Source of the DNA: Selaginella moellendorffii
Taxonomy: Eukaryota > Plantae > Lycopodiophyta
Direction: 5' to 3'
NCBI RefSeq assembly: GCF_000143415.4
Contig: NW_003314283.1
Coordinates: 2,064,633 to 2,094,916, forward strand
DNA length: 30,284 bases
The position numbers and the translations under genes are program-made. Within the stretch, counting starts at the first letter, position 1, and every line of letters starts with the position of its first letter. The notes below the pieces were generated by a model. The model saw nothing but the letters and a program-made list of their open reading frames with translations, did not search any database and had not been told where the DNA came from. This document shows, piece by piece, positions 1 to 30,100 of this stretch.

Positions 1-46
1 CCTAAACCCTAAACCCTAAACCCTAAACCCTAAACCCTAAACCCTA
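1..46 (+). repeat. Plant telomeric repeat (CCCTAAA)n at the window start, probable chromosome end
   Basis: Perfect CCCTAAA array from base 1, C-rich strand running 5'->3' inward as expected for a left chromosome end. Confidence 0.9.
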
Positions 47-100
47 GACTCCGGGTATGTATGAGTGGCCTCAGGCCCCCCACCATCCCAGTCCACACAC

Positions 101-449
101 GGTCAACGCGGGGTCAACGGTCAACGACCGAATATTCCGACAATATTCCCTGCAAAGTGAACCACGTTTTTCGTCGCCGGGTACGCACAAGTGACACAAG
201 CATTGTGGACGTAACGCATGCATCATATCATGCCACGTTTACAAGTTATCTTGCGTCAAAGGTACGTCACCCGCCGGACGAACGCTTACTGTCTTCGGCG
301 ATCCGCCGAAGTCATTCTCCGCGACTACCACTGCTGTGGAGTCACCAACCCCAGCTGTGCTACGCTCGCATCCTCGCGAGCCAACGCCGTCATGCACTTC
401 GCATGGCCGCCACTCGGACTCGCGCCACGTGACAGAGCCAGAATATAAG
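101..449 (+). promoter_or_regulatory. Putative internal Pol II promoter of the hammerhead element (repeated in each unit)
   Basis: Three GGTCAA W-box cores at 101-125, GAATATTC HSE-like motif, G-box GCCACGTG 424-431, TATAAG 444-449 about 40 nt upstream of the ribozyme. Confidence 0.45.
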
Positions 450-485
450 TAGAGTCGGCGCCGAGCTAGGGTTAGGGTAGACGTT

Positions 486-543
486 AGACGACTACACCCG
501 GCTGATGAGTCCCAAAAAGGACGAAACCGGTCTCGGGTTGTCT
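486..543 (+). ncRNA. Type I hammerhead ribozyme (minimal, palindromic stem III)
   Basis: CUGAUGA 502-508; stem II GUCC/GGAC with loop CAAAAA; GAAA 523-526; ACCGGU stem III; GUC cleavage triplet (cut after 532); stem I CCCGG/UCGGG plus AGACGA/UUGUCU. Confidence 0.92.
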
Positions 544-790
544 CTTGTCTTCTCCCTCGCTCGCGAATGAATGAAAATTCATTCTCTTGCCTCCTCTACT
601 TGCTCTCGATCACGCCGTTTCGACAACGGCACATGGAGAATGTGGATTGCGCAAAGTGGTGCCGCGATCTCGCCGGATTGCAACACCGCGGGGTGTCTTT
701 GACCCTAAACGCCTAAACGCGCCTAAACCCTAAACCCTAAACCCTAAACCCTAAACCCTAAACCCTAAACCCTAAACCCTAAACCCTAAA

Positions 791-1547
791 CAACCGCTGG
801 ACTCCGGGTATGTATGAGTGGCCTCAGGCCCCCCACCATCCCAGTCCACACACGGTCAACGCGGGGTCAACGGTCAACGACCGAATATTCCGAGAATATT
901 CCTTGCAAAGTGAACCACGTTTTTCGTCGCCGGGTACGCACAACTGACACAAGCATTGTGGACGTAACGCATGCATCATATCATGCCACGTTTACAAGTT
1001 ATCTTGCGTCAAAGGTACGTCACCCGCCGGACGAACGCTTACTGTCTTCGGCGATCCGCAACTAAAACCGGCGATCCGCAACTACCACTGCTGTGGAGTC
1101 ACCAACCCCAGCTGTGCTACGTTCGCATCCTCGCGAGCCAACGCCGTCATGCACTTCGCATGGCCGCCACTCGGACTCGCGCCACGTGACAGAGCCAGAA
1201 TATAAGTAGAGTCGGCGCCGAGCTAGGGTTAGGGTAGACGTTAGACGACTACACCCGGCTGATGAGTCCCAAAAAGGACGAAACCGGTCTCGGGTTGTCT
1301 CTTGTCTTCTCCCTCGCTCGCGAATGAATGAAAATTCATTCTCTTGCCTCCTCTACTTGCTCTCGATCACGCCGTTTCGACAACGGCACATGGAGAATGT
1401 GGATTGCGCAAAGTGGTGCCGCGATCTCGCCGGATTGCAACACCGCGGGGTGTCTTTGACCCTAAACGCCTAAACGCGCCTAAACCCTAAACCCTAAACC
1501 CTAAACCCTAAACCCTAAACCCTAAACCCTAAACCCTAAACCCTAAA
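791..1547 (+). mobile_element. Telomere-associated hammerhead element, unit 2 (757 bp)
   Basis: 757-bp period with its neighbours; telomeric tract at 1479-1547. Confidence 0.8.
1243..1300 (+). ncRNA. Type I hammerhead ribozyme, copy 2
   Basis: Identical to 486-543; predicted cut after 1289. Confidence 0.92.
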
Positions 1548-2420
1548 CAACCGCTGGACTCCGGGTATGTATGAGTGGCCTCAGGCCCCCCACCATCCCA
1601 GTCCACACACGGTCAACGCGGGGTCAACGGTCAACGACCGAATATTCCGAGAATATTCCTTGCAAAGTGAACCACGTTTTTCGTCGCCGGGTACGCACAA
1701 CTGACACAAGCATTGTGGACGTAACGCATGCATCATATCATGCCACGTTTACAAGTTATCTTGCGTCAAAGGTACGTCACCCGCCGGACGAACGCTTACT
1801 GTCTTCGGCGATCCGCAACTAAAACCGGCGATCCGCAACTACCACTGCTGTGGAGTCACCAACCCCAGCTGTGCTACGTTCGCATCCTCGCGAGCCAACG
1901 CCGTCATGCACTTCGCATGGCCGCCACTCGGACTCGCGCCACGTGACAGAGCCAGAATATAAGTAGAGTCGGCGCCGAGCTAGGGTTAGGGTAGACGTTA
2001 GACGACTACACCCGGCTGATGAGTCCCAAAAAGGACGAAACCGGTCTCGGGTTGTCTCTTGTCTTCTCCCTCGCTCGTGAATGAACGAAAATTCATTCTC
2101 TTGCCTCCTCTACTTGCTCTCGATCACGCCGTCTCGACAACGGCACACGGAGAATGTGGATTGCACAAAGTGGCGCCGCGATCTCGCCGGATTGCAGCAC
2201 CACGGGGTGCCTTTGACCCTAAACGCCTAAACGCGCCTAAATCCTAAAACCTAAACCCTAAACCCTAAACCCTAAACCCTAAACCCTAAACCCTAAACCC
2301 TAAACCCCTAAACCCCTAAACCCTAAACCCTAAACCCTAAACCCCTAAACCCTAAACCCTAAACCCTAAACCCTAAACCCTAAACCCTAAAACCCTAAAC
2401 CCTAAACCCTAAACCCTAAA
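1548..2420 (+). mobile_element. Telomere-associated hammerhead element, unit 3, with a long variant telomeric tract
   Basis: Same unit; tract 2236-2420 includes variants such as CCCCTAAA and CCTAAAA. Confidence 0.8.
2000..2057 (+). ncRNA. Type I hammerhead ribozyme, copy 3
   Basis: Identical to 486-543; predicted cut after 2046. Confidence 0.92.
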
Positions 2421-4540: not shown

Positions 4541-5334
4541 AGTTAAGCTGGCAAATTGGAAACAAAAAATTTGTGGCTTACAGTTAAATGTAAAAGCCAA
4601 TACTTATTCTAGGCATATGCTTAAGATCTAACAGCTGAGAACTAATTATAATTGCCTTAATACAAAAAATTGCTCTATATTATTATTCTTATCCAATATT
4701 GCTTTTTAAAATTTGATAACATTCTTTGATACTATCATGTTATGCTATAAAAGACATATGTTAAAATAAATTTAGAAGAAAACTAAATTTTTTTTATAGT
4801 AATTGCAATAGAAGTTGTTTATCTATGTTTTATAATTTTTATATTAAGATATTTAGCATAGCACTTTAAAAAACTTAGTGTGTTTTTATTTGGTTTCATT
4901 TGAGGTGATTGGTATACATCTTTGATAAGTTCATTACAAATTACGATAATAATGTGGTGTATCATCTTACTTATAAATAAATAAATCTTTAACGTATGCT
5001 ATAAGTTTCAAATGTCTTTAATTTTGTTAAACATTTTTTTTCTTTAATTATGTGTCATATTTGAGGTGTTTGTGTCACTTATCTCACTGTTGGGACTAAT
5101 GATCACTGCTGCTGTTACCTTGGGTACCTTTATCAAATTGGAAATGGTGTTGCAAATGAAGACCACCAAGAAAGGAAATGTTACAGAAGCTACCAAGGAC
5201 TAGTGATACCTCAGCTACTATTTTAGTTATGCAAAGTCATCATTAAAGAAATGGAAAGCAATGTTTACCATAAAAATTTAAGGATATGGATGCATGCATT
5301 ATGTCCACGATGCTTGTGTCAGTTGTACATACCC

Positions 5335-5420
5335 GTTTAGGTTTTAGGGTTTAGGGTTTAGGCGCATTTAGGCGTTTAGGGTTAAAGACACCCCGCAGTG
5401 CTGCAATTCAACAATATCGC
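5335..5420 (-). mobile_element. Inverted, decayed 3'-end fragment of the hammerhead element with telomeric repeats
   Basis: Reverse complement reads GCGATATTGTTGAATTGCAGCACTGCGGGGTGTCTTTAACCCTAAACGCCTAAATGCGCCTAAACCCTAAA, matching the unit 3' end. Confidence 0.88.
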
Positions 5421-16710: not shown

Positions 16711-17396
16711 AGGACTTATTACCATAGAGAAGCTTGGAATTAGCAATCTTGAAAGCCTGTGGGCATAAGTATCAAGCATACCGAGCTTTATGAGCCTTGA
16801 AGTTGCAACCTCTATTTATGTCAGCTTCTTGCCAACCTGATGCACTCTGCATTCATCACCAGCCATCTCAATCAGGATGGCGTAGTGACTCCACAAAGAT
16901 GTGAGGACCAATTTCCAAGCCTGCTGGATTTCTAGGTTTCTTCCAGGTTTGCAATTCAACAACCTTAGATGTACATGTCTAAAAGATGATTTGAGCTTGG
17001 AAATTCTAAATCTGGAATTCAGCTATGGCTATAGTTAAGTTGCACTACAACCTATAGAAAGAATGGGTATAATGTAAATCGGTATGGTGTCCTTAAAAAA
17101 TGAAAAACCACTTACTTGTGATAGGCTCCCATAATTGACCAGCCTAAAACTCATTCCATATAGTTAAAATGGATCTAGGAATTAGTTAAGTCCCCATCTC
17201 CATCCATATCCATTCGCTATACAAAGTCCATACTAGAAGCAGTTTACAGTGGTGAGCAAGGGAATGGTTTACCTTTGACTCTTTTAAAGGTTGGTATAGG
17301 AAGAGCCTTCGGGAAGAAACTTGTGATTGACAAGCCTCTTATGTTTGTGGGGATGCATAGTTACTTTTTGGACAAAATGAAGATCACTTGAAGTAT

Positions 17397-17610
17397 TATT
17401 AGGTGCCAGCTTTAACCACATGGTCAATGTCAGTCAAAAGGAGGCTCTTGGGTATAAGGGACTTAACCTACCCTGAGGCTTATAGTGGAGCAATGGCACA
17501 GTGGAGCTTTTGAGGTAACTCAAGGGTGGTTGGGTGGTGAGGAACCTCAAGAGGTGGCATAGCATAGTCTAGGGAAATTATATCTCTGTCTTTTTGTGCC
17601 AGATCATCAA
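17397..17610 (+). mobile_element. Degenerate solo LTR, family C (mirrored at ~28503-28716)
   Basis: Reverse-complement homology to 8372-8604 and 16494-16710. Confidence 0.75.
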
Positions 17611-18186
17611 AATCTTCAATCTCTTCAATCCCTGAATATTGACCTAACCTCCTAGTGACTCATCCTTGAGGTAAAGAGGTTCAGGAGAACCTGTTATAAC
17701 ACTCATGTTCTTTTAGTTCTAGACTAGAAAAGAAAATCACTATACCTAAAATTTTTCAATAACTTGGCTGAATTTAGAGTGCACTTCCACAATTACATTA
17801 TTGTCATCTATATGGAAGATTAGGGAGGTCATGACTAGCTCACTCTTTTCACTCCAGATGTATTCTAGCTCTTGAAGCAATGCTGATTTGCCACACTTCT
17901 TTGGGCTGGCCATTAGCATAATACAGGAGGGTTCCCTCCCCTAGAAATGCCATCATTGTCAACGTTTTGACTTCTATTTAACACATAAGAAGAATAACTT
18001 TGCTAAATAGTATGGAAAAGAGGATAGTGATGGAGAAAATTGTTACGAAGAATTATGAGAAATGAAAAGTGTTGCTTTGCTGTTTCTCTCTATTTGTCCT
18101 CTTGCCTTTAGCATTTATAGATAGATTAAAGAAACACATAGTCTTCAGAATAAAGTTTATTTTCTTGTGGTTCCAACCATTCCATA

Positions 18187-18546
18187 TCAGGGTAGAAGAT
18201 AACCTGAAGAGACAATAAGCTGTGAATTTGAAACAAGAAGAAGAAATTGAAGTGCCTTACTTCCACACTGATACTGATGGGGAAGAGTTCGATGACATAT
18301 TTTAGCAATGGTTAGAATTGAACTCAAGCTGATATACTTCGTGACATCTGAAGTAATTCTTGGGCACACACACTCAAGAGTGATCTTCCTCATAAAGCTA
18401 CAACAGGCTGGAGAGGGATTTGTGCTTTTGCAATTGCTGAGAATTCCATTGATGTTGTTGTCACATGTTGTATCAGCTTCAGAGAAGTTAAAGAAGGAAG
18501 CACTTGCTACAAGCAGTAACACTACAAATGTTTTCATCACTGCCAT
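18187..18546 (-). CDS. Non-specific lipid-transfer/prolamin-superfamily protein, ~100 aa (exons 18546-18261 and 18203-18187)
   Basis: Signal peptide; 8-Cys pattern C-C-CC-CxC-C-C; 57-nt GT-AG intron gives the C-terminus CGSYLLP. Confidence 0.85.
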   Translation of the reverse strand: MAVMKTFVVLLLVASASFFNFSEADTTCDNNINGILSNCKSTNPSPACCSFMRKITLECVCPRITSDVTKYISLSSILTIAKICHRTLPHQYQCGSKALQFLLLVSNSQLIVSSGYLLP

Positions 18547-18932
18547 TCATCAATGCCTTAGATGCTGTATATGGTTCTTATATAGTGGAGATCTGTTTGA
18601 TGAACACTATGAATGAAAGTATCTGATCCCACAACCAACAAACAACAAGTTCTAATATTGACTGGCAAACAGACCGTGGTGTCAAACACGGCATGGTTGC
18701 CAGTCAGCACGGCAGCATAGTCAGCACGGCATGCTTGCCAGTCAAGATTAAAACTTGTAGTTGCATGACTTTGACCACAGACCATGACTCTCGTATGTGA
18801 CTTTTGTTGACTTTATTTGAAAAATATACTCTTTGAGCATGGCAGTTGATAAAACCACGTCTTTCTGGGGTGATGCCGCATTCAAGATTGAAATTCCGGT
18901 GATGTTCAAATTTCTAGTTTCACAAGAAGAAA

Positions 18933-20272
18933 ATGATTTCTCACTGGGGCATCGTACTTCTCTTCGCACTTGGCATGAATCTGTCGTCTGAGGTATGATC
19001 ACATGATTCTGAAATGAAACTCTTAAGGTTTTCTTTCTTTTGTATAAGATCATGGACATGGAAATTCTACTGGAGTTCAAGCAAGGCATGTTGCAAAGCA
19101 ATTCTACCTTTTCTAACTGGCATGAAGGAAGCAAGGATGGGATTTGCAGCTGGAGAGGCATTAGTTGCAATTCTAAACGCCAAGTAGTGTCCATACATCT
19201 ATCCTCTGTGGATCTTGATGAAGCCTTGGTGGGAACTCTCACGCCAAGGCTTGGGCAGCTTTCATATCTTTCAGAGCTCGATCTATCGTTTAACAAAATA
19301 ACGGGGCAAATTCCTACCACCCTCGGAAATTGCTCCTCACTCACAGAGCTCAACTTGAGAGGGAACCAATTGACTGGCCATATTCCAGCAACATTAGGGC
19401 AGCTCCAGAATCTCACTGAGCTCTGGCTATCTGATAATTTCTTGAGCGGGTCTATTCCATCGAGTGTTGGGAACTGCTCCAAGCTGCGGTTCCTCAGTCT
19501 GGAAAACAACACCTTAACGGGCTCTATATCTCCATCGCTGGGTAAGCTCAAGAAATTGGAAAGTTTATCACTTTTTACAAACAATTTGGAGGGGCTTATA
19601 CCAATCACTCTTGGAAACCTTTCGCACCTCACATTTCTAGACATGTCTGACAACCTTCTATATGGCCCATTACCTGGCTCTTTTGCTGGTCTTCGTAGGC
19701 TAAAGTGGTTGGGACTATCGCGAAACTATTTTCTCAATGGATCGATTCCTTCGGATGTTATGGTGGGCATGCCATCTCTAACGCACCTAGAGCTCCATTA
19801 CAACAACTTTACAGGAAACATTCCCATGTTTAATGCGTCTTCTCCTGTTGTACTACTTCGCTTGGACGTTAACAGCCTGACAGGAAGCATTCCGCATTCA
19901 ATCACAGAGATCAAGGCTCTCCAGCAATTGCACCTCAACAAAAACTATCTAGATGGAAGCATTCCAAAAGGCATTAGCCAGCTGGATCGTCTTGAGATAC
20001 TTGACTTGAGTGACAACTATCTCAGAAATGAAGTTCCTCCACTCGACAAATGCACCAATCTTGGCTATCTCGACCTCCACAGAAACTTGATACGGAGCAA
20101 AATGCCAACGTTTGGTGCATGCACTAACCTTGTTTACTTGGATCTCTCAACGAACGAGTTCCAGGGAGAGATTAGCTCAAGGCTAGGGAATTGCTCCCAG
20201 CTCAAGGTTGTCAACTTTGCGCAGAACAATTTCACGGGTGAGGTGCCTACACGCTTCACAGCATGCAGCTAG
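18933..20272 (+). pseudogene. Truncated duplicate of the LRR receptor-like protein gene (exon 1 18933-18992, 56-nt intron, exon 2 from 19049)
   Basis: Near-identical to 24836-27180 up to 20246, then an unrelated tail PTRFTACS*; lacks C-terminal LRRs and the TM segment. Confidence 0.85.
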
Positions 20273-21542
20273 GCTTGGGGGACATCCTAAACCCTAAACA
20301 GGTGATGGATGAAGCTCCCGCAGACGCACTCCCCTGAGTGATCACGTGCTGGAGATGCCTCCCGAACCCCGGTTCGTTCCTGGTCAGGGCTAAACTCGCG
20401 TTGCAAGCTCAGCCACATCTTCTACCGCGCTTTGCAAGAGACGGAAGCATATGATTGCATCCTTCTCTGCATGACCGATGACCTTCAGGGTCTGGCCAAT
20501 GGACTCTAGGTATGTCCCAGTCACCCCAGGTCGTCCCCCACCGGTCAACGCCCGGTCAACGCTCAGTATACTGTCCAAACAGGAATATTCCCGAATATTC
20601 CCTGACAGTCAGATTGTTGACCGAGTCAACGAGGCCTACACCATTCGATTCTGCACCCCTTTCCAAGTGTGACTACGTTGGTCTCATCTCCTTACGATGG
20701 ACACCACACCTTGGAAAGCTCGCGAATCTCATAATGGTGCCATGCGACGACGTCAATGCCACACGCACCGACACCTCGCAGGAAAAGGACCTTTCTGCAT
20801 GAGCGAAGGACCTTGGGTACGTACCAGTCACTCCAGGCCACCTCCCTTTCGAGTCAACGCACGGTCAACGCGGAGTCAACGGTCAGAATGGAATATTCCC
20901 GAATATTCCCTGACAGTGTTTTTGTTGACCGAGTCAAAACGGCATATACCGTTGGATTCCGCTCTTCCTTCCGATCGTGAATATGTGAGTTTCAACTCTG
21001 AACTCCACACACGATTCGTTGAAAAGCGTGTTTTCCATTAAAACGGTGCCGCTCCTTCGACATCGGCAACGCACGCCAACAGCTCGCGGGATGGCTCTCC
21101 CCTGCATCACGCTGGACTCCGGGTATGTATGAGTGACCTCAGGCCCTCCACCATCCCAGTCCACAAACGGTCAACGCGGGGTCAACGGTCACGACGGAAT
21201 ATTCCCTGCAAAGTGGACCACGTTTTTCATCGCCGGGTACGTACGAGTGACACAAGCATTGTGGACGTAACGCATGCATCATATCATGCCGCGTTTACAA
21301 GTTATCTTGCGTCAAAGGTACGTCACCCGCTGGACGAACGCTTACTGTCTTCGGCGATCTGCCGAAGTCATTCTCCGCGACTACCACTGCTGTGGAGTAA
21401 CCAACACCAGCTGTGCTACGTTCGCACCCTCGCGAGCCAACGCTGCCACGCCACTTCGCATGGCCGCCACACGGACTCGCGCCACGTGACAGAGCCAAAA
21501 TATAAGTAGAGTCGGCACCGAGCTAGGGTTAGGGTAGACACT

Positions 21543-21600
21543 AGACAACTACACCCGGCTGATGAGTCCCAAAAAGGACGAAACCGGTCTCGGATTGTCT
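21543..21600 (+). ncRNA. Type I hammerhead ribozyme, copy 4
   Basis: Core, stem II and stem III unchanged; distal stem I is AGACAA/UUGUCU (G-U changed to A-U); predicted cut after 21589. Confidence 0.9.
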
Positions 21601-21740
21601 CTTGTCCTCTCCCTCGCTCACGAATGAATGAAAATTCATTCCCTCGCCTCCTCTACTTGCTCTCGATCACGCCGTTTCGACAACGGCACACGGAGAATGT
21701 GGATTGCACAAAGTGGTGCCGCGATCTCGCCGGATTGCAG

Positions 21741-22604
21741 AGCGTGAAGCTGCATGTGTCGGAGGTTCTTGACGACTTGAGTCGTGGAAACACGACCAAG
21801 TCATGGGAACTTTGTTGACTGGTGGAGGACAGTTCGGGACGACATCCCGACATAGCGAAGTGTCCGCGGTGGATGGACGTGGAAGACACTATGGGCGCAT
21901 TTTTGGATCTAGTGACAGGGAAGTGCTGTCACAAAGGGGGCCAGTGGCGGATGGTCGAGTTGGTTTGCTCGCGGAGGGGATCCCACATGGTTCTTGCTTC
22001 AGGGCTAGTCCTTTGAGAAGGTTCGCGGAGGCTTGCAAGTCTTGTGATTGTCACGATGCCGGCAACGGGGGCTCGTATATCATTGAAGGGGGCCAGCGCA
22101 CTTGTCTAGTGTGGGAGGCAAGGTAGCACGCTCTAGTCTAGAGCTGGAGGAGGCTCACACCTTGCTTGTTCTACGCCTTGGAGTTTGTTCGCAATGGGCA
22201 CCGACTTAGTGCTGGAAGTACACTGGGGAGGTAGGCGCTCCAAGACACAGCATCACGTCTTGGGGCGTAACAGGTGGCTTCAGCTTGTGCAGTGGAATCA
22301 CCTTGGAGGCGAGTGACCCATGAGCGACGCCGGGTCATCGTGCTCGAGTTGGACTGCTTGGCTGCGACGACGTCGAGCTAGATCGACATGGTGTTCATCT
22401 GGCTTGACATCATTGTAACCGAGTGGAGGAGTGGCGAGGCGAAGCAGGTGGCTTCAAGCTCCGTGGTGGAGTCACCTGGGAGGTGGACGGCCCAAGAGCA
22501 GCGCCGGGCGTTCGCGCTCATAGTTTCACTAGTTTCTTCGAGAGTGCGCTCTCAATGTTGTTTTGATCCCTTTGGGATTGGGGTAATGTACATATATGTT
22601 TAGT
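21741..22604. mobile_element. 864-bp unclassified insertion with an 18-bp target-site duplication
   Basis: GATCTCGCCGGATTGCAG at 21723-21740 and 22605-22622; this sequence is single-copy in the other units. Confidence 0.8.
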
Positions 22605-23439
22605 GATCTCGCCGGATTGCAGCACCGCGGGGTGTCTTTGACCCTAAACGCCAAAACGCGCCTAAACCCTAAACCCTAAACCTAAACCTAAACCCTAAAC
22701 CCTAAACCCTAGCCCTAAACCCTAACCCTAAACCCTAAACCCATGAAAAATTTCAATATGCACAATAAATATTTTTCAGAAATTGTTCAATAAGGAACTT
22801 CTTAACTTTAGAAGTTTATAACTACAGCAAGCTATATAAAATTAAATATAAAATGCTAGCTTTCAAAGATGTCATCTTGATCATACATTTTAAATTTAGA
22901 AAAATGTTTTAAATTAAAAGAATGACGTTAATTATTTTTCACTTTAAGGAAAATGGGAATATATCTATGATACCCATATATATTCTATAATAATCCTCAA
23001 TTTTAATAAACTTTTCTCTAATTCATTTATAATGGGGTAGGGGATATGGGCAATTCCAAATATAATGGGGATAATGGGTAGGTTGAGGTATGAACTACTT
23101 GAGATATTATTTATCTCCCCATTAGGTGTGCTATCTTTTGTTTTGAATCTTGCTTATATCTAAGCCTAAACTCTACCATGTTAGTTGGCGTATTTTGCTA
23201 TAAATATGCTAAAATCATTTAGCTTTGTTTTGCATGTTGATTTTAGAGTTGGAATTCTAAATGCTCTAAAACCATTATGATATTGCTCCATGTTCATGTT
23301 CCTTCATTTTTTTGTTGTATGCTTAAGAGTTTAACTTCATCCTTTTGTTCACTGTACCATAGCTCTAAAACTTAGATTCTGTTCTGGTGCCCTTGTTCAA
23401 GGGTTAAATTCCATTTTATAATTATTCACTATAGGGAAG

Positions 23440-24835: not shown

Positions 24836-27180
24836 TTAAGAACTGCCAAGACGAGGAAGAAATGAAGGTATGCTGAGGCCAATAGATGCGTCCTCATGTT
24901 CCTTTGCCCGAAGCTTATACCTCCAACTTTGAAGGCTGTCCCAGAACGTGATGCCTAAAAATGTGACCCAAAAGCCAATAAACACACCGCAGCCAAATGC
25001 CCACACTGAAGCCTCACGGAAGAGGAAGTCCTTCTCCCAACTTTTGTGACTTGCAGGGTGCTCTTGATCCTTTGTTGCATAGCCACAAGGAGACAATGGA
25101 AACCCACAAAGGTTCTTATTGCCTTGGAATGCAAGTGGAAACCGAGTGTTTAAATTGTATGCAGTTGGGACCAATCCGCTTAAGTTGTTGAATGAAACAT
25201 TAAAGGCTGACAAAGGCAACTCCCCAAACTCGTTTGGGATCCTGCCTTGGAGCATGTTCCAGGATAAGTCAAGCGACTGAAGCTTTTTCAAGCTGGAAAG
25301 GTTGAGAGGTATGGCACCGGTGAACTGGTTGTGCGAGAGGTTAAGATGCATTAGTCCAACCAGTTGCCCAATTTCTTCTGGGATGACACCCTCGAGAGAG
25401 TTGCTTGAGATGTCCAATGAAGTCATGTTGTTTGCAACAACGATCGTTGTCCGATCAAACTGTATCCTTGCGTCGTTGACTATGATGACCAGGCTCAACT
25501 CTACCCCTGTGTAAATGCCAAGATTCAAATCCCCACTCGTGTTGCCCTTGAAACCTTGAAACTTCCAAAGCGCGCGTGGCAGCTGCCCTGTGAGTTTATT
25601 GTTTGACAGATCTAGAATTTGGAGCCAAATGAGATTGGTGGTGCAATCTGGAATCTGGCCAAACAGCTTGTTGTATGCAAAAGACAATATCATAATTCCT
25701 GACCAGCTGCAAGTTTCTTGAGGGATCTCGCCTGTGAAATGGTTCCTACTATAGTCCATGACTCTGAGATAAGTGGAATTCAAGCTTTTTGCTGGAATTG
25801 TGCCGCTCAACGTGTTGTTGGAAATGACAAAGAAGACCAAGCTTGTCAAGTTACTCAAGTCAAGCAGCACCTCACCCGTGAAATTGTTCTGCGCAAAGTT
25901 GACAACCTTGAGCTGGGAGCAATTCCCTAGCCTTGAGCTAATCTCTCCCTGGAACTCGTTCGTTGAGAGATCCAAGTAAACAAGGTTAGTGCATGCACCA
26001 AACGTTGGCATTTTGCTCCGTATCAAGTTTCCGTGGAGGTCGAGATAGCCAAGATTGGTGCATTTGTCGAGTGGAGGAACTTCATTTCTGAGATAGTTGT
26101 CACTCAAGTCAAGTATCTCAAGACGATCCAGCTGGCTAATGCCTTTTGGAATGCTTCCATCTAGATAGTTTTTGTTGAGGTGCAATTGCTGGAGAGCCTT
26201 GATCTCTGTGATTGAATGCGGAATGCTTCCTGTCAGGCTGTTAACGTCCAAGCGAAGTAGTACAACAGGAGAAGACGCATTAAACATGGGAATGTTTCCT
26301 GTAAAGTTGTTGTAATGGAGCTCTAGGTGCGTTAGAGATGGCATGGCCACCATAACATCCGAAGGAATCGATCCATTGAGAAAATAGTTTCGCGATAGTC
26401 CCAACCACTTTAGCCTACGAAGACCAGCAAAAGAGCCAGGTAATGGGCCATATAGAAGGTTGTCAGACATGTCTAGAAATGTGAGGTGCGAAAGGTTTCC
26501 AAGAGTGATTGGTATAAGCCCCTCCAAATTGTTTGTAAAAAGTGATAAACTTTCCAATTTCTTGAGCTTACCCAGCGATGGAGATATAGAGCCCGTTAAG
26601 GTGTTGTTTTCCAGACTGAGGAACCGCAGCTTGGAGCAGTTCCCAACACTCGATGGAATAGACCCGCTCAAGAAATTATCAGATAGCCAGAGCTCAGTGA
26701 GATTCTGGAGCTGCCCTAATGTTGCTGGAATATGGCCAGTCAATTGGTTCCCTCTCAAGTTGAGCTCTGTGAGTGAGGAGCAATTTCCGAGGGTGGTAGG
26801 AATTTGCCCCGTTATTTTGTTAAACGATAGATCGAGCTCTGAAAGATATGAAAGCTGCCCAAGCCTTGGCGTGAGAGTTCCCACCAAGGCTTCATCAAGA
26901 TCCACAGAGGATAGATGTATGGACACTACTTGGCGTTTAGAATTGCAACTAATGCCTCTCCAGCTGCAAATCCCATCCTTGCTTCCTTCATGCCAGTTAG
27001 AAAAGGTAGAATTGCTTTGCAACATGCCTTGCTTGAACTCCAGTAGAATTTCCATGTCCATGATCTTATACAAAAGAAAGAAAACCTTAAGAGTTTCATT
27101 TCAGAATCATGTGATCATACCTCAGACGACAGATTCATGCCAAGTGCGAAGAGAAGTACGATGCCCCAGTGAGAAATCAT
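24836..27180 (-). CDS. LRR receptor-like protein (RLP, no kinase), ~762 aa; exon 1 27180-27121, exon 2 27064-24836
   Basis: Signal-peptide exon MISHWGIVLLFALGMNLSSE spliced in phase 0 (GTATGA...ATAAG); LRRNT with CSWRGISC; many LxxLxLxxNxLxGxIP repeats; island domain; GNKNLCG; TM helix; short tail. Confidence 0.92.
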
Positions 27181-30100
27181 TTTCTTCTTGTGAAACTAGA
27201 AATTTGAACATCACCGGAATTTCAATCTTGAATGCGGCATCACCCCAGAAAGACGTGGTTTTATCAACTGCCATGCTCAAAGAGTATATTTTTCAAATAA
27301 AGTCAACAAAAGTCACATACGAGAGTCATGGTCTGTGGTCAAAGTCATGCAACTACAAGTTTTAATCTTGACTGGCAAGCATGCCGTGCTGACTATGCTG
27401 CCGTGCTGACTGGCAACCATGCCGTGTTTGACACCACGGTCTGTTTGCCAGTCAATATTAGAACTTGTTGTTTGTTGGTTGTGGGATCAGATACTTTCAT
27501 TCATAGTGTTCATCAAACAGATCTCCACTATATAAGAACCATATACAGCATCTAAGGCATTGATGAATGGCAGTGATGAAAACATTTGTAGTGTTACTGC
27601 TTGTAGCAAGTGCTTCCTTCTTTAACTTCTCTGAAGCTGATACAACATGTGACAACAACATCAATGGAATTCTCAGCAATTGCAAAAGCACAAATCCCTC
27701 TCCAGCCTGTTGTAGCTTTATGAGGAAGATCACTCTTGAGTGTGTGTGCCCAAGAATTACTTCAGATGTCACGAAGTATATCAGCTTGAGTTCAATTCTA
27801 ACCATTGCTAAAATATGTCATCGAACTCTTCCCCATCAGTATCAGTGTGGAAGTAAGGCACTTCAATTTCTTCTTCTTGTTTCAAATTCACAGCTTATTG
27901 TCTCTTCAGGTTATCTTCTACCCTGATATGGAATGGTTGGAACCACAAGAAAATAAACTTTATTCTGAAGACTATGTGTTTCTTTAATCTATCTATAAAT
28001 GCTAAAGGCAAGAGGACAAATAGAGAGAAACAGCAAAGCAACACTTTTCATTTCTCATAATTCTTCGTAACAATTTTCTCCATCACTATCCTCTTTTCCA
28101 TACTATTTAGCAAAGTTATTCTTCTTATGTGTTAAATAGAAGTCAAAACGTTGACAATGATGGCATTTCTAGGGGAGGGAACCCTCCTGTATTATGCTAA
28201 TGGCCAGCCCAAAGAAGTGTGGCAAATCAGCATTGCTTCAAGAGCTAGAATACATCTGGAGTGAAAAGAGTGAGCTAGTCATGACCTCCCTAATCTTCCA
28301 TATAGATGACAATAATGTAATTGTGGAAGTGCACTCTAAATTCAGCCAAGTTATTGAAAAATTTTAGGTATAGTGATTTTCTTTTCTAGTCTAGAACTAA
28401 AAGAACATGAGTGTTATAACAGGTTCTCCTGAACCTCTTTACCTCAAGGATGAATCACTAGGAGGTTAGGTCAATATTCAGGGATTGAAGAGATTGAAGA
28501 TTTTGATGATCTGGCACAAAAAGACAGAGATATAATTTCCCTAGACTATGCTATGCCACCTCTTGAGGTTCCTCACCACCCAACCACCCTTGAGTTACCT
28601 CAAAAGCTCCACTGTGCCATTGCTCCACTATAAGCCTCAGGGTAGGTTAAGTCCCTTATACCCAAGAGCCTCCTTTTGACTGACATTGACCATGTGGTTA
28701 AAGCTGGCACCTAATAATACTTCAAGTGATCTTCATTTTGTCCAAAAAGTAACTATGCATCCCCACAAACATAAGAGGCTTGTCAATCACAAGTTTCTTC
28801 CCGAAGGCTCTTCCTATACCAACCTTTAAAAGAGTCAAAGGTAAACCATTCCCTTGCTCACCACTGTAAACTGCTTCTAGTATGGACTTTGTATAGCGAA
28901 TGGATATGGATGGAGATGGGGACTTAACTAATTCCTAGATCCATTTTAACTATATGGAATGAGTTTTAGGCTGGTCAATTATGGGAGCCTATCACAAGTA
29001 AGTGGTTTTTCATTTTTTAAGGACACCATACCGATTTACATTATACGCATTNNNNNNNNNNNNNNNNNNNNNNNNNNNNNNNNNNNNNNNNNNNNNNNNN
29101 NNNNNNNNNNNNNNNNNNNNNNNNNNNNNNNNNNNNNNNNNNNNNNNNNNNNNNNNNNNNNNNNNNNNNNNNNNNNNNNNNNNNNNNNNNNNNNNNNNNN
29201 NNNNNNNNNNNNNNNNNNNNNNNNNNNNNNNNNNNNNNNNNNNNNNNNNNNNNNNNNNNNNNNNNNNNNNNNNNNNNNNNNNNNNNNNNNNNNNNNNNNN
29301 NNNNNNNNNNNNNNNNNNNNNNNNNNNNNNNNNNNNNNNNNNNNNNNNNNNNNNNNNNNNNNNNNNNNNNNNNNNNNNNNNNNNNNNNNNNNNNNNNNNN
29401 NNNNNNNNNNNNNNNNNNNNNNNNNNNNNNNNNNNNNNNNNNNNNNNNNNNNNNNNNNNNNNNNNNNNNNNNNNNNNNNNNNNNNNNNNNNNNNNNNNNN
29501 NNNNNNNNNNNNNNNNNNNNNNNNNNNNNNNNNNNNNNNNNNNNNNNNNNNNNNNNNNNNNNNNNNNNNNNNNNNNNNNNNNNNNNNNNNNNNNNNNNNN
29601 NNNNNNNNNNNNNNNNNNNNNNNNNNNNNNNNNNNNNNNNNNNNNNNNNNNNNNNNNNNNNNNNNNNNNNNNNNNNNNNNNNNNNNNNNNNNNNNNNNNN
29701 NNNNNNNNNNNNNNNNNNNNNNNNNNNNNNNNNNNNNNNNNNNNNNNNNNNNNNNNNNNNNNNNNNNNNNNNNNNNNNNNNNNNNNNNNNNNNNNNNNNN
29801 NNNNNNNNNNNNNNNNNNNNNNNNNNNNNNNNNNNNNNNNNNNNNNNNNNNNNNNNNNNNNNNNNNNNNNNNNNNNNNNNNNNNNNNNNNNNNNNNNNNN
29901 NNNNNNNNNNNNNNNNNNNNNNNNNNNNNNNNNNNNNNNNNNNNNNNNNNNNNNNNNNNNNNACTAGGGGAACTTTAGATGTAGAGGCTTTAGTGGTTAT
30001 TCCAATAGTTTTGCGTGATGCGGATCTTTGATGGTGGAATTGGCTTGAGGATTCTCATGTTGTGGATAAGAAACCTTTAATATCGCTGCATAATAGCTTA

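Follow-up and report, generated by a model that had tools for sequence, protein, structure and literature searches.

Predicted canonical type I hammerheads in the 3' region of telomere-associated Penelope-like elements of Selaginella moellendorffii

Minimal hammerheads of Penelope-like elements (PLEs) in metazoans were reportedly described by Lunse et al. in 2017. The systems closest to the motif analysed here are the canonical type I hammerheads published from the pseudo-LTRs (PLTRs) of endonuclease-less (EN-less) PLEs of S. moellendorffii (PMC4209133). For canonical motifs with a short palindromic helix III, a dimer model was stated in that paper in 2014; no Selaginella motif was assayed in vitro there. 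Its metazoan minimal hammerheads share with the Selaginella motif the association with PLEs and the proposed cleavage as dimers. Coprina families Sm1 and Sm2 (Repbase) are named in PMC13159263, and two subfamilies (A and B) are found here. Attachment to telomeres through a hammerhead and reverse-complement repeats has been described (PMC8557442, PMC6431247). At the 3' ends of the bdelloid rotifer elements Athena and Terminon, a hammerhead likewise lies 5' of reverse-complement telomeric repeats, and telomere-capped, 5'-truncated copies form head-to-tail chains that can become internal (PMC6431247). Newt satellite 2 and axolotl HHR_Amex1 resemble the Selaginella motif in a helix III of one pair with a palindromic tetraloop, in an extended helix I and in their tandem copies (PMC7229834; PMC6155905).

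We have analysed the last 30,284 bp of S. moellendorffii scaffold GL377587.1 (the window, whose position was fixed by a host gene that it contains), together with a set of related loci (among them L003 and L005 to L008) reached through paralogues of a host gene of the window on other scaffolds. Four copies of a type I hammerhead are present in the window (Table 1). As read from the sequence, the motif is a canonical type I hammerhead situated in the pseudo-LTR (the non-coding 3' region) of telomere-associated EN-less PLEs, for which we use the name Coprina after PMC13159263 and PMC4209133. Compared by description, not by sequence, no difference was found from the Selaginella hammerheads of PMC4209133: species, type I topology, 6-bp helix I, 4-bp helix II, short palindromic helix III, tertiary-contact motifs and adjacency to the telomere-complementary repeats of EN-less PLEs are the same. 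Ribozyme, element and dimer model are already in print, and the finding is real but ordinary. The additions made here (a comparison of subfamilies, a TATA-like box and a decoy fold) refine the test and leave the class unchanged. They provide a small test system in which two natural subfamilies share the ribozyme, with a candidate promoter just upstream and a predicted decoy fold.

The other systems differ more. The newt and axolotl hammerheads belong to 330-nt retrozyme repeats for which circular RNA has been shown, whereas the Selaginella motif belongs to an element that is telomeric and linked to a reverse transcriptase (RT), and is known from DNA alone. Athena and Terminon reach 40 kb, against approximately 6 kb in Selaginella, and their repeats directly follow the ribozyme, whereas approximately 170 nt of hairpins lie between the two in Selaginella. 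The metazoan minimal hammerheads of PMC4209133 are without helix III, loop 3 and tertiary contacts, whereas the Selaginella motif has all of the canonical parts. A preliminary description of this DNA had called the motif minimal, a label that we have dropped: helix II has 4 bp (versus 7 to 8 bp), helix I has 6 bp, loop 3 is present and no extra nucleotide precedes helix II.

Read as RNA, the core of copy 1 consists of CUGAUGA (502-508), GAAA (523-526) and a GUC that ends at C532. Helix II (509-522) has four pairs (GUCC/GGAC) and the loop CAAAAA, and helix I is formed by 496-501 with 533-538, the core-adjacent pair being G-U. The motif therefore shows the CUGANGA, GAAA and NUH core, three helices with helix I open-ended, and both loop I and loop II motifs of the canonical type I. 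The cores start at 502, 1259, 2016 and 21559; in 100 shuffles there were 0 matches. With the Rfam models, copy 4 is recognised as Hammerhead_1 (42.5 bits, gathering score 34) and copies 1 to 3 as HH9 (42 bits, E 1.2e-7). Other Rfam matches (MIR2933, SCARNA18 and Fluoride) were far under their gathering scores and were taken as chance. The intact core and the number of copies agree with the preliminary description, as do the predicted starts of the 3' products (533, 1290 and 2047). No copy turned up when viral and metagenome contigs were searched by pattern.

Both UAC (493-495) and CAAAAA are invariant in eight aligned copies. Since loop II and the UAC that precedes helix I both fit the HH9 consensus, the architecture is canonical and not of the minimal PLE type, and we infer that the two motifs make a tertiary contact. 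Helix III had been read as a short palindromic stem, AC-CG-GU. The palindrome is real, ACCGGU being self-complementary, but a loop of 2 nt is unable to close, so helix III is effectively one A-U pair capped by a palindromic CCGG tetraloop. ACCGGU is kept in nine of ten copies and lost only in the decayed copy at L003. Immediately 5' of the helix I extension, at 466-478, are two G-rich telomere-like hexamers, TAGGGT TAGGGT, which pair in predicted folds with a pyrimidine run 3' of the extension and are partly retained in subfamily B.

Table 1. Coordinates of the hammerhead copies and associated features, numbered from the first nucleotide of the window
Feature	Position	Strand	Remarks
Unit 1: 5'-truncated 3' end of EN-less PLE, subfamily A	47..701	+	93% identity with copy 4 and with the copies in L007 and L008
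Perfectly periodic block with hammerhead copies 1-3	366..2077	+	Period 757
TATA-like box TATAA(G/A)TAGAG	444..454	+	Candidate promoter
Helix I extension, 5' strand	479..490	+	Pairs with 539-550; folding and three in-register double-sided A/B subfamily changes
Hammerhead copy 1	486..543	+	
UAC bulge, candidate loop II partner in tertiary contact	493..495	+	Aligns with HH9 consensus UAC
Helix I 5' strand ACCCGG	496..501	+	CCGG 498-501 can alternatively pair with CCGG 527-530 (inactive decoy fold)
Catalytic core, helix II and helix III of copy 1	502..532	+	Predicted cleavage after C532
Palindromic helix III ACCGGU	526..531	+	A15.1-U16.1 and CCGG tetraloop; 6-bp duplex in double hammerhead
Helix I 3' strand and extension	533..550	+	Folding, subfamily comparison
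Structured 3' tail of hairpins, with variant C-rich telomere-complementary repeats at its end	551..727	+	Same tail closes the L008 RT element
CCCTAAA telomere tract separating unit 1 from unit 2	728..790	+	
Hammerhead copy 2	1243..1300	+	Identical to copy 1
Hammerhead copy 3	2000..2057	+	Identical to copy 1
Telomere tract linking array to Ty3-like remnant	2256..2420	+	
Copy 4 element: RT-ORF tail, internal telomere-like repeat, whole 3' non-coding region, approximately 300-bp subrepeats	20271..21740	+	
Hammerhead copy 4	21543..21600	+	Core intact; G>A at 21594 breaks a helix I pair
864-bp insertion in copy 4 tail hairpin	21741..22604	+	18-bp target duplication 21723-21740 / 22605-22622
Remainder of copy 4 tail and telomere tract	22623..22742	+	

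The identity of the element comes from the related loci, which encode ORF1 and a 580-aa RT with ADKN and YIDD motifs and a weak match to RVT_1 (E 6.7e-5). A comparison of this RT with solved structures gave no match, and a GIY-YIG domain was looked for in the RT of L006 to L008 and is absent. These three loci, outside the window, thus carry a PLE-type RT with a DKG-like motif and YIDD and no GIY-YIG. The RT ORF continues across a two-copy telomere-like repeat and runs into non-coding sequence that starts with CAGGTGAT, a start also seen in the copy 4 element at 20299. At L006 and L007, a subfamily B 3' region carries the hammerhead downstream of the RT, which bears out the PLE association already proposed; each of these elements has one hammerhead, and the 3' region in L007 ends in telomere repeats. 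The RT element of L008 ends in the subfamily A tail of the window (99% identity). The subfamily A region is joined to an RT only via this chimeric copy and approximately 25 nt of RT tail. Given the RT linkage of both the CAGGTGAT region and the tails, the units in the window are 5'-truncated 3' ends of EN-less PLEs. The hammerhead is followed by reverse-complement telomeric repeats at the 3' end, and the 5'-truncated copies are telomere-capped in one orientation. Four ORFs in the units and the copy 4 element (61-432, 21129-21509, 20697-21041 and 21803-22126) have no Pfam match and were treated as non-coding; no homologue was found for 61-432, and for three of the four there is no gene on record.

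The telomere-like repeat of the RT ORF lies near its C-terminus (window 20285-20306; L008 12658-12680). Many truncated copies begin exactly at this repeat (L007 993 and 2212; window 20299), which suggests that it is a preferred point of truncation or healing.

The two subfamilies are identical at 54 of 54 nt over the ribozyme (489-542), while their flanks are unalignable and match at background level. Pairing of the helix I extension is kept in both, across three double-sided changes in register. We consider this covariation suggestive: it involves just two lineages, and a similar covariation score was reached by one slid control. The TATA-like box starts 57 to 58 nt 5' of C3 of the core in 10 of 10 copies, in both subfamilies, and occurs nowhere else in 234 kb. 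The identity over 54 nt could partly result from conversion between the subfamilies.

This comparison is stronger evidence than copy 4, in which a hint of selection had previously been seen. In copy 4, the core is indeed unchanged and G490>A does turn a G-U into an A-U pair (in the distal extension), but two disruptive changes had been omitted. G537>A, present also in an L007 copy, disrupts C497-G537 of helix I, and U550>C does the same to a pair in the distal part. The two changes from G-U to A-U, at 483 and 490, are CpG transitions, which are approximately three times more frequent in this comparison (11% versus 3.5% elsewhere). At a divergence of 5.1%, a 31-nt core is left unchanged with P=0.20. 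For these reasons, we have rejected selection inferred from copy 4 alone.

Some hammerheads are damaged, including a subfamily B copy at L007 13592 (G12>A) and the copy at L003 37325 (four changes, one of which breaks the palindrome). Such copies would be expected if the hammerhead were mostly an inactive passenger, kept identical by conversion and with no need of cleavage, and it has been noted that the function of PLE hammerheads is unclear and that they may parasitise PLEs (PMC8557442). This reading is very improbable in our view: conservation stops sharply at the ribozyme, and the extension still pairs with changed letters. Outside the ribozyme, among the few motifs common to both subfamilies is the palindrome GGAATATTCC, which recurs in their subrepeats (window 127-150 and 20501-21206; L006 14010-14170).

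An unstable helix III with a palindromic sequence, as in double hammerheads, is found here, and axolotl Amex1, which also has one pair and a palindromic tetraloop, gave 6% cleavage in 1 h as a monomer but far more when dimeric (PMC7229834). In folding calculations, the inter-copy ACCGGU duplex contributes -8.3 kcal/mol. A double hammerhead (-289.6 kcal/mol) is 14 kcal/mol better than two monomers with A15.1-U16.1 closed (-275.5 kcal/mol), and the closure of helix III costs approximately 6 kcal/mol per monomer. The best fold of the monomer is a decoy in which the CCGG of helix I pairs with that of loop III (probability 0.49 to 0.56 in both subfamilies; in copy 1, 0.49 for the decoy and 0.41 for helix I). 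With tertiary contacts outside the model, the minimum fold of a two-copy transcript is two decoy monomers (-296.7 kcal/mol) and the inter-copy duplex has a probability of 0.002 in the ensemble. From the amphibian precedent and the folding energies, faster cleavage as a dimer seems to us quite probable. The palindrome is invariant and so offers no covariation to show selection on self-complementarity itself.

Strict dependence on the dimer, as had been proposed, is much less probable. Newt hammerheads also cleave singly through an extended, internally looped helix I (PMC6155905), and the helix I extension is conserved here. The same element and ribozyme might even be adequate as a monomer, through the extended helix I and the contact of loops I and II, with the palindrome merely inherited in this class of hammerhead. 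The covarying part is the extension, several RT-linked copies have a single hammerhead, and the local helix I would form first in transcription, whereas a swap requires strand exchange. Invertebrate type I motifs of the canonical kind do cleave efficiently on their own (PMC7229834), but with a 2-bp stem and a tetraloop they are 2 nt longer than the Selaginella motif, and it was the matching axolotl geometry that cleaved so poorly. The cost of closing helix III and the competing decoy pairing also weigh against a sufficient monomer, which we hold to be unlikely, though not negligible.

The three leftmost copies form an array. Since they lie within one duplicated block, they count as a single observation, so although the four copies originally reported are all present, the window has two independent hammerhead sequences. 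Each unit of the array consists of approximately 655 nt of non-coding DNA, then the variant telomere-complementary tail, then a CCCTAAA tract; the region 533-740 has a folding z of -3.2. In the array, short non-coding repeats thus follow one another in tandem, each with one hammerhead, but these units are PLE ends that have been truncated and differ in length. Unit 2 is chimeric, its 5' part being of the type found in unit 3 and its 3' part of the type found in unit 1, and the identical block reaches 167 nt upstream and 31 nt downstream beyond the cut sites. A single unequal exchange between two truncated neighbours would yield exactly this triple array; an additional round of copying on a circle is possible.

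The exact period, the identical telomere tracts in the units and the TATA-like box 5' of each hammerhead could also be taken to indicate that the 757-nt unit, from ribozyme to ribozyme, is a non-autonomous retrozyme-like circle and that the array arose by copying of more than unit length. Tandem hammerhead repeats of S. moellendorffii have been termed putative retrozymes (PMC5680766). However, the extension of the block beyond the cut sites and the chimeric unit 2 fit unequal exchange, the 757-nt unit is found at no second locus among the 8 loci and the tandem spacing in L007 is 1219. We regard such a circle as improbable. It is also unlikely that the array is the functional form, as had been suggested, because tandem copies are not evenly spaced from locus to locus and there are several RT-linked copies (L006 and L007) with a single hammerhead. 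As each 3' region of the RT-linked elements has one hammerhead, pairing would naturally take place between those of consecutive elements in any head-to-tail chain.

The array is situated 28 to 30 kb inside the right end of GL377587.1, with the C-rich telomere strand on the forward strand and directed away from that end. The start of the window was considered as a scaffold end, and this was rejected. The array (window 1-2420) would be either an internalised telomere, an end fusion or an assembly mis-join. In units 2 and 3, but not in unit 1 or copy 4, GGCGATCCGCAACTA is repeated around a short A run (1057-1080 and 1814-1837), a local replacement that looks like template slippage. Right after the array, positions 2421-2428 begin with CAGGTGAT like the 3' region of the element (either a few copied letters of the element or chance), followed by a Ty3-like remnant with a CCHC knuckle. 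At 5283-5420, on the reverse strand, there is a short element tail with telomere repeats fused to approximately 50 nt of mid-unit sequence, without a hammerhead.

We propose, with a probability of roughly 0.6 for the whole, that the motif is a PLE 3'-region hammerhead that is cleaved in pairs through ACCGGU, that unit-length RNA is copied onto the telomere and that the array is a by-product. The motif, its conservation and its place between the RT part and the telomere-complementary tail are observed; the steps from cleavage onward follow the model proposed in PMC4209133. A transcript would run from the 3' region of one element through its tail and telomere repeats into the next, with a hammerhead at each end. 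The hammerheads would cut the element RNA after C532, pairing through ACCGGU as a double hammerhead that acts much faster than a single, partly decoy-trapped one. Unit-length RNA would be released and then ligated. With the telomere overhang as primer at the C-rich tail, the RT would then copy back across the restored ribozyme, and telomerase would cap truncated copies. The 757-bp array would have arisen from two truncated neighbours and one unequal exchange, and would not be the unit under selection. If paired cleavage and a circular intermediate were shown, they would explain how copies retain both ribozyme and tail despite a cut 5' of the telomere-priming tail.

A more speculative version, which we think rather doubtful, involves the promoter. 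Here the TATA-like box would place the start of each element RNA on the first nucleotides of the ribozyme, and the hammerhead at the 5' end would be held in the decoy fold until the next copy is transcribed. Joint cleavage would then give a circle, whose telomere-complementary tail would prime copying at the chromosome end. If true, this would be a two-ended switch that couples promoter, cap removal and circularisation, in a land plant retroelement related to telomerase.

The tail hairpin of copy 4 is interrupted at a site where different inserts are found at other loci: 864 bp in the window, approximately 640 bp in L003 (37146-36480, reverse strand) and approximately 1.6 kb in L008 (13276-14916), with a further such locus in L007 (approximately 800-920). 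Repeats resembling the 18-bp target duplication flank the insert in L003. A region of scaffold GL377697.1 (L005 8365-11490 and 13439-16958) that matches window 20246-22742 is without copy 4 and is probably the other haplotype. Near that site, two telomere tracts enclose a piece of 3.3 kb that contains ORF1 and the beginning of the RT and is cut on its 3' side at telomere-like sequence. On either side of copy 4, an inverted duplication (17062-20246 and 25867-29051, 99.9% identical) carries an LRR receptor-like gene and a lipid-transfer-protein gene, and the left LRR copy is cut where the copy 4 element starts.
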